Assembly: GCA_016748015.1 (NCBI GenBank)
Contig: JAAOMT010000139.1
Span: 62,001-126,000 of the forward strand
Reading direction: 5' to 3'
DNA: 64,000 bases
Origin: Geosiphon pyriformis uo1
Lineage: Eukaryota; Fungi; Glomeromycota
In this document: piece after piece, positions 6,213 to 25,169 of the stretch
Numbering within the stretch: the first letter of the stretch is position 1
Layout: every line of letters begins with the position of its first letter
Made by a program: the position numbers and the translations under genes
The notes under the pieces: generated by a model
What the model saw: only the letters and a program-made list of their open reading frames with translations
Databases searched by the model: none
What the model was told of the DNA's origin: nothing

Positions 6213-9200
6213 TTAAGTGTTCAAGTTTGGTTGTTGTTCTATTATAATTATTGGTTCTAAATTTCGGGGAATATCTTCAGGATTAATTAAAGAGGAATGT
6301 GTACCAATTTGTGGAATTAATGGTTCAAGATTGTTTCTAGAATAATAGTGTTTCAATCTGTCTCTATGTACAACTTTTGCTAGTATTTTGTCATCAAGTC
6401 TTAACTTGTATGATCCATTGCCTAGAATTTTGTGAATATAAAATAGTCCATCCTATTTGTTTTCAAATTTCTCACTCTATTGTTTTTCAGCCTTAGTTCT
6501 GTATAAGAGAACTTTATTTCCAACTTTAAATTCGTTGGTAATAGGTGGTAATTTGTTGTCATGTCTTTCTTTTTGTTGAGCTTGGGAATATTCAATATGA
6601 GTTGCTGCTATTCTTCTTTTTCCTTCCAGTGTACTAAAAAGAGTGTAGGCTCTTCTTTGGAGTGTTTCTTGAAAGTTTTCTTTATTGATTGGTTGTACTG
6701 AATATGTTTCTACTGTGAAATTAATTGGTAATATTGCTGTTCTTCTATAAGTAAGATCAAATGGTATGTGTTTCATAGTATCTTGTTTTAGTGTTCTGTA
6801 TACTAGTAACACTGATAAAATAAAGATATTTCATTCCTGCTCAAAGTTTGTTAAGACTTTGGCTAGAGATTCACATAATGTTCTATTAAAACGTTTTACA
6901 AGTCCATTTGTTTGAGGGTGATAAGATGATGATAGAGGTTTTTTGACTTTGAACCGTTCACAAATTTCTTGTATCAAGTTGTTTACAAAATGTGTTTCTT
7001 GATCAGATAAAAGTTCAATTGGGCATCTATATCTACAAATAATGTCTTCATAGATGAAATTTGCTACTGATTTTGCATCTGCTCTTTGGATGGCTTTAGC
7101 TTCAGACCATTTGGTAAGATAATTCACTGCAACTACAATATAATGATTTCCTTGGGTTATGATAGGTAATAGTCCGACTAAATCAATTCCAACTCTGTCA
7201 AAAGGTTGTCCAATTTTGATTGGATTTAAAGGTTCTGTGGGGTAAGTTCCTCCTCTTCTTTGACAATTATCACAAAATTCTACATATTGTCAAATGTTTT
7301 TTTGCATGTGAGGCCAAAAATAATGTTTAAAAGTTCTTTGAATTGTTCCATCTCTTCCCAAGTGTGCTGAAAAAGGATCTGTATACATGTTGTATAGAAT
7401 TGTTTCATTTTCATTTTCCTGTACTAATTTGAGTAGTTGGTTTGAGTTTTTACAATTTCTATAATATATTTTGTTATGGTGTATAAAATATTGTTTGGAT
7501 TGGTTTTGTACTCAATGTTTTTTACTTGGAGACCAATTTTCTGGCATGGTGAGAGTCTCCAAATAGTTTTTGATGTTGTTGTAGTTTTCTGGATTCATTA
7601 TTGTTGATCTTGTTGTTTGTTCTGCTGTTAAGTTTGTTGGTGTTTTGTTGGTGTTGATGTTGGTATTAGTATTGTCTCATTCTTGAGAGGCTATTAACAT
7701 TGATGTGTAGTTTTCCTGGTTTGTAATGTAGAATGTATCTGTAGTCTGCTAGGAAGTTATTCCATTGAGACTGTTTGGCACTTTGTTCAGTTTTCTTTTT
7801 ATTAAGCCATTTGAAACCAATATTGTCAGTTATTATGTCAAATTTTTTTCCATTCTTCAGGTATTGTTGAAAGTGTTTAAGAGCCCAGATGACTGCAGTG
7901 GCTTCCAATTCAGTTGAGCCATATTTGAGTTCTGTTGGCTTAAGTGTTCTGTTGGCATAGGCAATAACTTGTTCCTGGCCATTTTCATCCAATTATAATA
8001 AGATGACACCAAATACTATGTGTGAAGCATCAGTGGTTAATTAAAATCGTTTGTTGAAGTCTGAGTAAGCAAGAACTGAGGCTGTTGTCAATTTTGTTTT
8101 GAGAGTTTCAAAAGCTTTTTGTTGTTCTTCAGTCCATTTGTATGGTACGTTTTTGTTGGTAAAATAATTGAGTGGTTTGGCAATTTCTGAGAATTCTTTT
8201 ATGAATTTTCAATAGTAAAAGGCTAATCCTACAAATTTTCTTAGTTCTGTAGTATTTCTGGGGGTTTGAAAGTTTTTGACAGCACTGATTGTTCCTGGAT
8301 TTGGTTTAACTTTATCTTTACTAACTATGTGTCCAAGAAAGATCAAGCTTGTTTTTCCAAAGTGATATTTCTCAATGTTTAACTTTAATCCTGCTTTCCA
8401 TAATCATTGAAAAACTTCTTGCAGGTAAATGAAATGAGTCTCAAAGCTTGGTGAGTATACATCAGTATTATCAAGATAGACAACTACTGATTGCCACAAG
8501 AGCCCTTCATATACCACATCCATGAGTTGCTAGAATGTTGCTGGTGCATTGCAGAGTCCAAAAAGCATAACATTAAACTCATAGTTTCCTTCTTGGATGG
8601 TAAATGCTGTTTTGGGTCAGTCTTTTGGATCCATTTCGACTTGCTAGTATCTACTTTCTAAGTCTAAAGTTGAGAAGAACTTGGCTTTTCCTAGAGCATC
8701 TAGCATATCATCAATTCTTGGAAAAGGATAGACATCTCCAATTGTCACACTGTTCAATTGGCGATAGTCAACACAAAATCTGATTTTTCCATTTTTCTTT
8801 TTAATCAGGACTACTGGTAAAGCCTAAAGACTTCTTGATGGTTGAATCAATCCGTTATTGAGCATTCTCTGAACTTCTTCTCTGATGAATTGGTGGCTGG
8901 CCGGTGGCACTCTGTAAGCTTGCTGTCATTTTGGTAAAGCATCTCCTGTATGGATCTAATATTGAACCATATCCGTTTTTCCCAGGTCATTGTTGTCTTT
9001 TGCAAATATATCTGCAAATTCAGCTATCAATTGTTTCAATTGTCTTTGTTGTTAAGGTTCTAAGGGACCCATGTTGATTTGAGAGAGTTTTTTTTCTAAA
9101 AAGTGGTAGTTTTCAGTAGTGAGAATGATATTTGGATTTGGGAGTAGTATGTGCCTTACAATTTCGATGAAATTAGAGACAATTTGAGGGTTTTCATCTT

Positions 9201-21800: not shown

Positions 21801-22764
21801 TTTATTCAAGACAACCAACTATATTAATAAGAACACCAAAACTGTTCTACTCCATAATAAGTTATAAAAAACAATGAAAAAGAAACTATATTACATAGTA
21901 TGCATTCTGATCCAACTACAAAACACTTTAATAAAGATGCTACTTTCAAAAGAACACTAAATTTATACTATTGGCTAACAATATACAAAGACATTTTTGA
22001 ATATGTGCTTAATTGTGACTTATATTAGCAAAGAAAAGAAGCAAGACCAACAGAACCACTTCAATCTATTTCAGTTGGAAATTCATTTAATAGAATTGGG
22101 ATTGATTTGGTTGGATCTCTCTTAATTACATCTCAAGGAAATCACTATATTACTGTAGTCATAAACTATTTTACAAAATAGCCAGAAACCAGAGCAATCA
22201 AAGTGACCAATGCCAAAACAGTAGCTGAATTTGTGCATTAAAACCTAATTTGCTGACATAGATGCCTAAAAGAATTATTATCTGATCAAAAAACACATTT
22301 TGTTAATAATACACTAACTAAACTAAGCCAAAGATTTGCAATAAAGTAATCTTTATTATTACCATACCACTCACAAACAAACAGATTGGTAGAACAATTT
22401 AACCAAATACTGTGCAAAGCATTAGCAAAAATAAGTTATGAAAACAAACAAGAATAGAACTTATTCATATCTTCTGTACTCTTTGTATACTGAATATTGA
22501 AACAAAATACAACTTAGTTCACATCATTTGAACTAGTCTATAAAAGAAAAGCTACATTACCAATTGAACAAGTAATATTATCATATTCAACAGAAATAAT
22601 TAATGAAGAGAATTTTGAAGCTATAGTGAACTCTTTTTATAATCACATCTTTTAGTCAGCATATTTGTGGTGACTATAGAAAGATGAGACTATAAAAAAT
22701 GATTAATATCTTATCACATGATCTATATATTACATGCATAATATAATAACTAATTATATATATT

Positions 22765-23200
22765 TTATTTAAAAAAGCTATCTATTTGCAACTGTTTTTT
22801 CTCTTCTTGAACTTTGAGAACAGTATTATGAATTAATGTTTTCAAAGTTTTAAAAAAGTCTGAATCAACTTTTTCACTATACTGTTCTTTACAATGGTGC
22901 AATGTATTTTTAAGTGCAGTTTTATCTTGATGTGTAAATAACAAAAACAAAGATTCATCTTCATCTTCACTTTTTAAATCTTTATTTGCATTAGAATTTC
23001 CATTATACTTGTTGTTAATAAGATCCACAATTTTATTCTCTGAGGCATAAGTGAATAATGGTTCAAACTTGTTAATATTAATGAAGTTTATTGCCAATAG
23101 CTTGTCAATATCAACATACTCAATAAGAACTTGTACTTCTTGTAGGAGTTCTTGTTCAATATCTAATAGATGGACTGGTATTTGACTATTATTTAGAACT
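22765..23200 (-). pseudogene. C-terminal remnant of a pogo/Tigger-type transposase
   Basis: Acidic stretch SEDEDE followed by a helical region ending KKQLQIDSFFK*, a QxxIxxFF PIP box typical of pogo transposase C-termini; lies next to the TIR. Confidence 0.7.
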
Positions 23201-23209
23201 ATGATTCAA

Positions 23210-23734
23210 AAAAATTTGACCACTTTACTCATGTTCTAATCAATGTATTTGCCATTAAAGTAACAATAATTTATCTAATTTATTGCTCCAGAATCTCTTA
23301 CATTAGCTGCCTTTTGATACAATTTGACAGCTTAATCCATGTTCTAATTGACGCATTTGTCATTAAAGTAGCAATGTCTTAATCAAGTTATTGCTTCAAA
23401 ATTCTCTATATCACTTGTCTTTTGATACAATTTGACAGCTTGATTTATGTCCTGATTAACACTTTTACCATATTGATAGCAATGACCTAATCGAGTTATT
23501 GCTTTAGAATTCCCTGCATCAACAGTCTTTTGATATAATTCGACCCCTTGACTTTTGTTCTAATTAATACCTTCATTATGCTGATAGCAATAACCTAAAT
23601 TGTTCATTGTAGCAGAATTCTCTACATTACTTGTCTTTTAATATAATTTGACAGCTTGACCCATGTTCTAATTAACATCTTTGCCATAAAAGTAGCAATT
23701 TTTTAATTTATTTATTGCTATAAAGTTTCCAGTA
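23210..23734 (-). pseudogene. Sel1-like repeat (SLR) array, ~5 x 36 aa (108-bp period)
   Basis: Manual translation: ...ATMNNLGYCYQHNEGIN*NKSQGVELYQKTVDAGNSKAITRLGHCYQYGKSVNQDINQAVKLYQKTSD..., matching A..NLG.CY..G.GV..D...A..LYQKAA..G. Confidence 0.92.
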
Positions 23735-23794
23735 TTTAAACAGAATAGATGGTAAAAATCTAATTTGAGATTTTTACATTTTTAAAAAATACCT

Positions 23795-24180
23795 CCAAAC
23801 AGCCACAACAATTAACATGGCAATGATAATTCAGTTTGTTTATCTTCCAATAGTCTTAACAATTAATGCGACAATGATAATTCAGTCACTTATCTCCTAA
23901 TGACTTTAACAATCAATACAACAATAATAATCAGATTCACTTACCTTTGGATGGTCTCAGTAATCAATACAACAATAGTAATTCACTTACTTTTAGACAG
24001 CTACAACAATCCACATGAATATATTAATCAAATTTGCTTATCTCTAAATGGTTATGGCAATTAATGTAACAATGATAATCAGATTTATTTACTTTTGAAT
24101 AGCCTTGACAATCAATGTAACAATGATAATTTACTTCACTTATCTTTGGATAGTTATGGCAATTATCACAGCAATGCTAA
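23795..24180. repeat. Degenerate tandem array, ~7 units of ~51 bp (17 codons)
   Basis: CAATGATAAT-like anchors at 23821, 23872, 23922, 23973, 24070 and 24121. Confidence 0.85.
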
Positions 24181-25169
24181 ATAAATTACTTAGTGGCTTG
24201 GGCAATTATTCAATATTTGCCACTAAGGCAAAGCAGAACATACTATTTTACACTAATTTGTTTGTTGTAACTTTTAAATTATACCAATAAAATAATAAAT
24301 TAATAAATAAAGCAAATAATAATAGATTAATATAAGTCTTATTATTGTAATACTTAAATGCAAAATAGTGTTAATATTTTAAAATAATATTTGAAGCACC
24401 TTTTATAATCTGAAATACCTTACATGTTTGATTAAATATGAGATGACATCTAATGTTCATATCTAATATCATATGATTATAGTGTGACTATAGAGAGTAG
24501 AAATTACTTATATTCTGTTATCATATTTGTGAGAATAGAGACTATAAAGAGATATATATAGTAAAAGTAACTATAAAAAGATAATATTACATATAAATAG
24601 TTTTGGTTTTTAAAAAAATGTGATTATAAGAAAATAGTAACTATAACCAGAAAGACTATAAAGAAAGTTTACTGTATCTTACATTAAAGAACATACCAGC
24701 TAATAAAAATATTGGATGACAATCAAAGAATAGCAGCTGACAATATTAGTTATACTCAAAAATAACAAAAAAAAAGACATGATAACTGCCTACCAGAACA
24801 ACCAATAGAATTCAAGATTGAAGACCAAGTACTGTTATATCATACAAAAGCTAAAAAACAATGGAGTGGAAAGTTTAACTCAAAATAGAACAGTTCATTC
24901 CACATACATGAAGTTTTAGGAAATAAAGCTTACAAATTATGATTGGAAGACAGGATTTTAAAAAAAGTAGCATATGGAAATCAGTTAAAAATTTATCATA
25001 CAAAACAGGAATTATTATTATCAATACCTTAGCTAGAAACACAAATTTCATTAATCAGACCAAAAGATATATTATAAGATCTGAAACCAATCATCATCAT
25101 TGAAATGTAGACAATGTGCAACAAATTAAATTAGGAAATTCAAATATATATAGCATCTAAAAAATAGCA

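Follow-up and report, generated by a model that had tools for sequence, protein, structure and literature searches.

A decayed pogo-type transposon with a Sel1-repeat cargo inside a Gypsy integrase of Geosiphon pyriformis, and its relatives in the same genome

The window analyzed here is a stretch of 64,000 nucleotides from the fungus Geosiphon pyriformis uo1 (GenBank assembly GCA_016748015.1, contig JAAOMT010000139.1, positions 62,001 to 126,000 of the forward strand). At positions 22624-24674 it holds a 2051-bp insert, which combines the remnant of a pogo-type DNA transposon with Sel1-like repeats and a tandem array, and which interrupts the integrase of a Gypsy retroelement. The insert region is AT-rich (24-29% G+C) and lies amid nested, decayed retroelements. 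Its features are listed below from left to right; the A- and B-type copies named there are relatives of the insert elsewhere in the genome and are described further on.

22029..22621, plus strand: host Gypsy integrase, upstream part (decayed rve core), from its translation and from rve and rve_3 matches on paralogous copies
22622..22623, no strand: left TA target-site duplication, a single TA at the empty sites of six paralogous Gypsy copies
22624..22644, plus strand: left terminal inverted repeat (TIR), first base C>T, one mismatch to the family TIR pattern CAGTRAACTYTYTTTATARTC, with the same end in more than 25 other copies
22672..22696, plus strand: two subterminal GACTATARA motifs, from a motif scan
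22768..23198, minus strand: pogo transposase C-terminus remnant of about 143 aa, collinear with the end of the full transposases in A- and B-type copies, reading ...NCWHYIRILNNSQIP..., with its stop codon at 22765-22767
23198..23199, no strand: deletion junction at which 2334 bp of the B-type element are missing; insert positions 2-575 and 574-1651 map to L031 2149-2722 and 5057-6136
23199..23806, minus strand: Sel1 cargo of five 36-aa Sel1 repeats, with stops, from a PF08238 match and a 108-bp period
23807..24187, no strand: 51-bp tandem array, 3.4 copies by TRF and five in-phase copies by repeat search
24188..24653, no strand: AT-rich 5' subterminal region with GACTATARA-type motifs starting at 24486, 24540, 24569 and 24639, from a motif scan
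24654..24674, minus strand: right TIR, a perfect match to the family TIR pattern CAGTRAACTYTYTTTATARTC
24675..24676, no strand: right TA target-site duplication, from the same paralogous empty sites
24677..25029, plus strand: host Gypsy integrase, downstream part (SH3-like C-terminal region), from a collinear alignment and from paralogue L043:1990-2331, which matches SH3_Tf2-1

The borders of the insert were established by comparing Gypsy copies at the insertion site only. In an alignment of window positions 22224-25074 with six paralogous copies, the left flank stops at 22624 and the right flank restarts at 24675, with the subject coordinates overlapping by about 2-3 bases. The paralogues have an empty site with a single TA, GAAGCTA/TCTTAC (the slash marks the point of insertion), where the window reads GAAGC-TA-insert-TA-TCTTAC. 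Because the paralogues read uninterrupted across the site, the coordinates given in the first-pass annotation of this DNA are exact and the target duplication is TA. On the paralogues, rve and rve_3 lie upstream of the site and SH3_Tf2-1 lies downstream of it, which places the insert between them, inside the integrase, as that annotation had proposed.

The two ends of the insert are TAGTGAACTCTTTTTATAATC and the reverse complement of CAGTAAACTTTCTTTATAGTC, which form 21-bp TIRs of the CAGT type. They had been called degenerate, and the left one is indeed changed at its first base. With up to three mismatches allowed, the family TIR pattern has two matches only in the 64-kb window (0.1 expected by chance), and these are the two ends of the insert. 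The GACTATARA motif, reverse-complemented, makes up the inner half of the TIR, and the copies of this motif would be candidate transposase-binding sites. The last 253 bp on the 5' subterminal side are also found in elements of the family that have no Sel1 repeats.

The pogo part of the window copy is a stop-free stretch of 146 aa on the minus strand (22768-23205) that ends in ...KKQLQIDSFFK-stop and is the direct continuation of the transposase of longer relatives (...IQNCWHYIRILNNSQIPAHLLDIEQ...). The motif QLQIDSFF (22771-22794), one residue before the stop, was seen in the window copy and in each of the long relatives that were read. Its letters fit the PIP-box consensus Qxx[ILM]xxF[FY], which is conserved in pogo, Tigger, and Lemi1 (PMC5371812). 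The tail has no Pfam match of its own, and the helix-turn-helix (HTH) and DDE domains are missing, so that only the transposase C-terminus is kept, as had been noticed. In the longer relatives the transposase starts with MPKN... and matches HTH_Tnp_Tc5 at 52.1 bits and DDE_1 at 51.7-54.7 bits (stop-free pieces of L031, L034, and L035). These domains, together with the TA duplication, the CAGT ends, and the PIP-tailed remnant, bear out the assignment to the pogo type.

Upstream of the transposase tail and on the same strand, tandem-repeat analysis found 4.5-5 units of 108 bp. The longest stop-free piece of this block (23386-23559) matches PF08238 (Sel1) at 39.4 bits against a cutoff of 30.7, with two further scores of 34.9 and 34.1 bits, which agrees with the earlier description of about five Sel1-like repeats at this place. 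The 51-bp tandem array next to them is likewise present, as described. It was considered as a Cys/His-rich coding repeat and rejected: a 50-aa open stretch recurs in four copies without a Pfam match, the consensus breaks its frames, and Sel1-free elements of the family (the E-type below) have the array as well. It is treated here as noncoding.

To place the window copy in its family, the insert was searched against its own assembly (128.3 Mb in 792 contigs). The genome searches score the best candidates only, and the copy numbers given here are lower bounds. The matches were of three kinds, namely full-length, many to positions 2-575 only, and others to positions 574-2051 only, and reading part of the listed loci resolved them into five forms, A, B, C, C', and E.

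The A-type (for example C685, 4261 bp), with at least 30 left ends listed, has TIRs, a transposase, and a 1.9-kb 5' region of its own, with neither array nor Sel1 repeats; it matches the insert over the first 575 bp and last 253 bp only. Its 1.9-kb block (L032:3837-5763, L034:3900-5170) is unrelated to the array and to the Sel1 block, gave no Pfam or NCBIfam match, and holds open reading frame (ORF)-like stretches of 93 and 121 aa, opposite to the transposase strand, that are conserved between copies. The block may represent another cargo, distinct from Sel1.

The B-type is about 4.25 kb long and present in at least nine copies. Its left 2.1 kb are the same as in the A-type and contain the whole transposase; beyond them lie a 629-bp tail, seven Sel1 repeats, the array, and the right end. 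Its foreign block of about 1.3 kb is made up of the seven Sel1 repeats and the 629-bp tail, and the Sel1 block lies on the transposase strand, upstream of the transposase, in all nine copies. Three copies were read from end to end and are bounded by TA/CAGT...ACTG/TA (L052 741-4991, 4251 bp; L053 574-5824; L054 364-5726), the last two containing later insertions. A probe with the 629-bp tail matched the nine B-type copies and nothing else in the genome.

About ten loci with 74-76% identity to the insert form the E-type, in which transposase, array, and right end are present and Sel1 repeats are lacking; a Sel1 DNA probe of the genome matched no E-type locus. In place of the roughly 1.3 kb of the B-type, the E-type runs from the sequence TTAATTA straight into the array, and homology between the insert and this subfamily restarts at 23807. 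The two E-type copies read differ from each other by about 26%. They lie at L051:4467-7781 (C784) and L050:4647-5633 (C656), the latter being a transposase-less derivative, and belong to an older subfamily. The presence of the array without Sel1 in this diverged subfamily shows that it is not part of the cargo but is native to the pogo lineage.

A few further observations concern individual copies. In the B-type copy on C702 (L031:6137-7100), unrelated DNA with a 149-aa ORF (6608-7057, minus strand) stands in place of the right 400 bp of the element, as a result of truncation or of a nested insertion. One short tandem repeat (...RIPGFL...EFQDS... peptides) borders or breaks into two pogo copies, of the B-type at L035:3177-3322 and of the A-type at L034:5204-5466; it probably belongs to a separate repeat family whose members insert in or beside pogo elements. 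The stretch just upstream of the transposase start (L035:4222-4497, L034:3684-4001, L031:4134-4271, all on the minus strand) is DNA common to the A-, B-, and E-type copies read. It bears a weak resemblance to the PP-loop motif of TilS, an identity that is unconfirmed, with an E value of 0.004 in Pfam and NCBIfam, far below the cutoffs, and a blank profile search of PDB sequences.

The two remaining forms are deletion derivatives. The C-type comprises the window copy, C773, C655, and C476, all with the same deletion junction, ...TTTAGAA/CTACAATT..., which has a 2-bp AA microhomology. The segment deleted relative to the B-type corresponds to L031 2723-5056 and covers most of the transposase, the TilS-like stretch, the 629-bp tail, and two Sel1 repeats. 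The C'-type comprises C654, C729, C718, C385, and C714, in which insert positions 1-364 are joined to 650-2051 at one junction common to the five. In the C-type the Sel1 frame continues without a shift into the transposase tail, giving an open stretch of 169 aa in L036 and L037. This joint between Sel1 repeat 5 and the PIP-box tail begins right after a stop that is common to the copies, and its phase is taken to be accidental.

DNA of the Sel1 block occurs in 19 places in the genome, which correspond to 18 copies, one of them split, and all are pogo copies. All ends examined are flanked by TA, and the flanks all differ, except for one pair: C655 (L003/L037) and C476 (L016+L013) have identical flanks on both sides, the C476 copy being split by about 10 kb of inserted DNA. 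This pair is therefore one insertion, whose locus was later duplicated or was assembled twice. Since the ends are TA-flanked and the flanks differ, the Sel1 block has been carried to about 17 independent sites (nine B, three C, and five C'). The same block in 18 copies at about 17 independent TA sites indicates that it moved with the element, as the first-pass annotation had supposed. The alternative that it inserted later and independently into the window copy alone, without traveling with the pogo element, is practically eliminated by this census, in which the same block with the same boundaries recurs at different sites, and by the lack of terminal repeats or of a duplication at either edge of the block, which agrees with the expectation that it has no target duplication or termini of its own.

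The state of the cargo was assessed from an alignment of the 5' region of 18 copies (the L001-L020, L031, L035 set), and a working consensus served to test whether the stops recur among them. The Sel1 frame opens in the middle of a repeat and has no start codon, even in a deamination-aware consensus that favors C over T and G over A. Two in-frame stops, after repeats 2 and 4, stand in 15 of the 15 copies that cover them (14 or 11 read TAG, the rest TAA). A frameshift in repeat 6 is present in nine of the nine long B-type copies, the sole copies that keep this stretch. A stop closes repeat seven, and the 629-bp tail beyond it has no open frame. From a frame that opens mid-repeat, the common stops and frameshift, and the closing stop with its tail, it follows that the block looks like the 3' part of a Sel1 gene plus some downstream DNA, already disabled in the master element. 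Moreover, because the stops and the frameshift are common to the copies and a start codon is lacking, the cargo was already noncoding when the family spread; it has neither the start nor the uninterrupted frame of a functional Sel1 ORF.

The copies differ from their majority consensus by 6-9%, and about 98% of the differences are transitions. Some 75% of the differences are C>T or G>A, with 0-23 transversions per copy in the 18 aligned copies. This mutation pattern looks like a strong signature of deamination, or of a process like repeat-induced point mutation (RIP), acting on repeats in this genome. The tree of the copies is star-like and does not separate C, C', and B, and together with the divergence it would fit one old burst followed by decay. 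Judged by their sequences, all copies are dead today.

The origin of the block was sought in the genome's own Sel1 genes and in protein databases. No parent gene was found in the genome at the DNA level, where the tail matches the nine B-type copies and Sel1 DNA matches the pogo places only; the intact parental gene expected by the first-pass annotation was thus not recovered. In a protein search, identity between the cargo and the genome's intact Sel1 ORFs (255-2065 aa) did not exceed 41%. A HMMER search of 1.84 billion protein representatives likewise reached at most 41% identity and gave no donor; its top matches are merely long multirepeat proteins, one of them bacterial, and their ranking is uninformative on origin. 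Because no donor was found, the wording "captured from a host gene" rests on the identity of the domain and on the Sel1-free sister subfamily.

Taken together, these results are best read as follows: the insert is a decayed, nonautonomous, internally deleted copy of a Sel1-cargo family of pogo (Tc1/mariner-related) elements, a reading to which we assign a probability of roughly 0.85. The 3' part of a Sel1 gene would have been taken into the B lineage once, possibly by aberrant gap repair or template switching. A single internal deletion of 2334 bp then gave rise to the 2051-bp C-type by fusing Sel1 repeat 5 to roughly the final 143 codons of the transposase; internal deletions of this kind may arise by abortive gap repair. 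The C and C' copies would have been moved by transposase supplied in trans from full-length relatives, which is possible because the C-type kept both TIRs and the subterminal motifs. One such trans-mobilized C-type insertion would have entered the Gypsy integrase of the window, and the C' deletion form would have spread likewise.

Several points weigh against this reading. Besides the lower-bound copy numbers, trans-mobilization is deduced from the structure of the copies, and no donor gene was found in either the genome or the 1.84 billion protein representatives (best identity, 41%). Furthermore, there is one outgroup subfamily, which makes a gain in B and a loss in E equally parsimonious.

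This last point bears on a different timing, in which the Sel1 fragment was gained before the three subfamilies split, after which the E-type lost it and the A-type replaced it. One gain plus one loss is as parsimonious with a single outgroup, and the A-type, whose region is wholly replaced, is uninformative. The E-type copies, however, although about 26% apart, have the same short junction of TTAATTA and then the array, with no Sel1 remnant, and we regard the earlier gain as unlikely. A broader idea concerns the lineage as a whole, which may hold a swappable 5' "cargo bay" in its transposase-encoding elements, that is, repeated and autonomous capture, as a fungal pogo counterpart of the plant Pack-TYPE transposons. 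It would rest on the TilS-like scrap in all subfamilies, the Sel1 block of the B-type, and the 1.9-kb block of the A-type, and we offer it as a tentative suggestion that is somewhat doubtful.

The first-pass annotation had proposed that a Pack-type nonautonomous pogo element itself captured the Sel1 gene, and that transduplication by such elements expanded the Sel1 family in this fungal lineage. The window element is indeed nonautonomous, is bounded by TIRs and a target duplication, contains Sel1 repeats, and was multiplied, and Sel1 families are large in Glomeromycotina (PMC9453076). Nevertheless, this explanation is very improbable. The cargo sits in 4.25-kb elements that encode a transposase, and the window copy derives from them by deletion. 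The cargo lacks a start codon, with stops common to all covering copies and a frameshift common to the long ones. There are 18 dead cargo copies against 1323 first-look Sel1 candidates in the genome, and of the approximately 30 intact Sel1 loci among the matches listed, none is closer than 10 kb to a listed pogo end. As no parent gene was found and the intact Sel1 genes are so distant from the cargo, a role of pogo transduplication in the amplification of the Sel1 family is unsupported.

It could also be argued that the Sel1 repeats are a native, functional part of the pogo lineage, either an accessory ORF or a spliced N-terminal transposase domain, that was lost in the A- and E-types. The constant position and strand of the block in the nine B-type copies and the 169-aa frame that links it to the transposase tail in the C-type would suit this view. 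It is opposed by the two common stops, by the frameshift of the long copies, and by the mid-repeat start without ATG. Moreover, about 1.1 kb without an open frame separates the Sel1 block from the transposase start, and about ten E-type loci are without Sel1. We therefore give this view very little credence.

The case of the window is accordingly that of a real but modest transduplication of a gene fragment by a pogo element, whose copies are dead and few and have no connection to the functional Sel1 family. For Tc1/mariner-type elements, most documented examples of gene-fragment capture come from plants. In this fungus of the Glomeromycotina lineage a chain has been dissected that leads from a Sel1-free relative through a cargo-bearing full-length element to two deletion derivatives, multiplied at independent sites. 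This pogo family lends no support to transposon capture as the driver of the huge Sel1 expansions in these fungi. In addition, cargo copies can be misannotated as Sel1 genes or as Sel1-transposase fusions, and so inflate family counts.

Among known systems, the family resembles the pogo/Tigger superfamily (IS630-Tc1-mariner group) in its TA duplication, its short CAGT TIRs, the CENP-B-type HTH (HTH_Tnp_Tc5) and DDE_1 domains of its long relatives, and, by motif, a C-terminal PIP box like that of Drosophila pogo, human Tigger, and Arabidopsis Lemi1 (PMC5371812). It is unlike that superfamily in its foreign Sel1 block and 51-bp array, and the window copy keeps the tail only, without the catalytic or DNA-binding parts.

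In a limited literature search no report was found of a pogo-borne gene fragment in fungi. For Rhizophagus irregularis, MULEs have been proposed, from proximity, to help expand the kinase and Sel1 families (Dallaire et al. 2021, bioRxiv 10.1101/2021.03.30.436303). The general notion that genes of these expanded families may be duplicated by DNA transposons is common to both cases. In contrast with that proposal, however, the cargo described here is physically inside the pogo element, is nonfunctional, and is not closely related to intact Sel1 genes.

Pack-TYPE transposons, including Pack-Mariner elements with TA duplications, have been described in plants and are defined as nonautonomous (Gisby & Catoni 2022, PMC8903248). 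Like Pack-Mariner and the Pack-MULEs, the elements studied here are of class II, have TIRs and a target duplication, and multiplied a probable fragment of a coding gene by transduplication; low copy number has likewise been reported for Pack-Mariner clusters (PMC8903248). They differ in that the cargo is also found in the transposase-encoding B-type and the nonautonomous forms arose later, by deletion, and also in their fungal host, in the lack of a nameable parent gene, and in a cargo that is a dead fragment. The deletion derivatives themselves are comparable to those of the Ds/Ac type, with one internal deletion (here with a 2-bp microhomology), both ends kept, and a spread that would depend on transposase made elsewhere. 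Unlike in Ds/Ac-type derivatives, the deletion joins the Sel1 frame in phase to the transposase tail.

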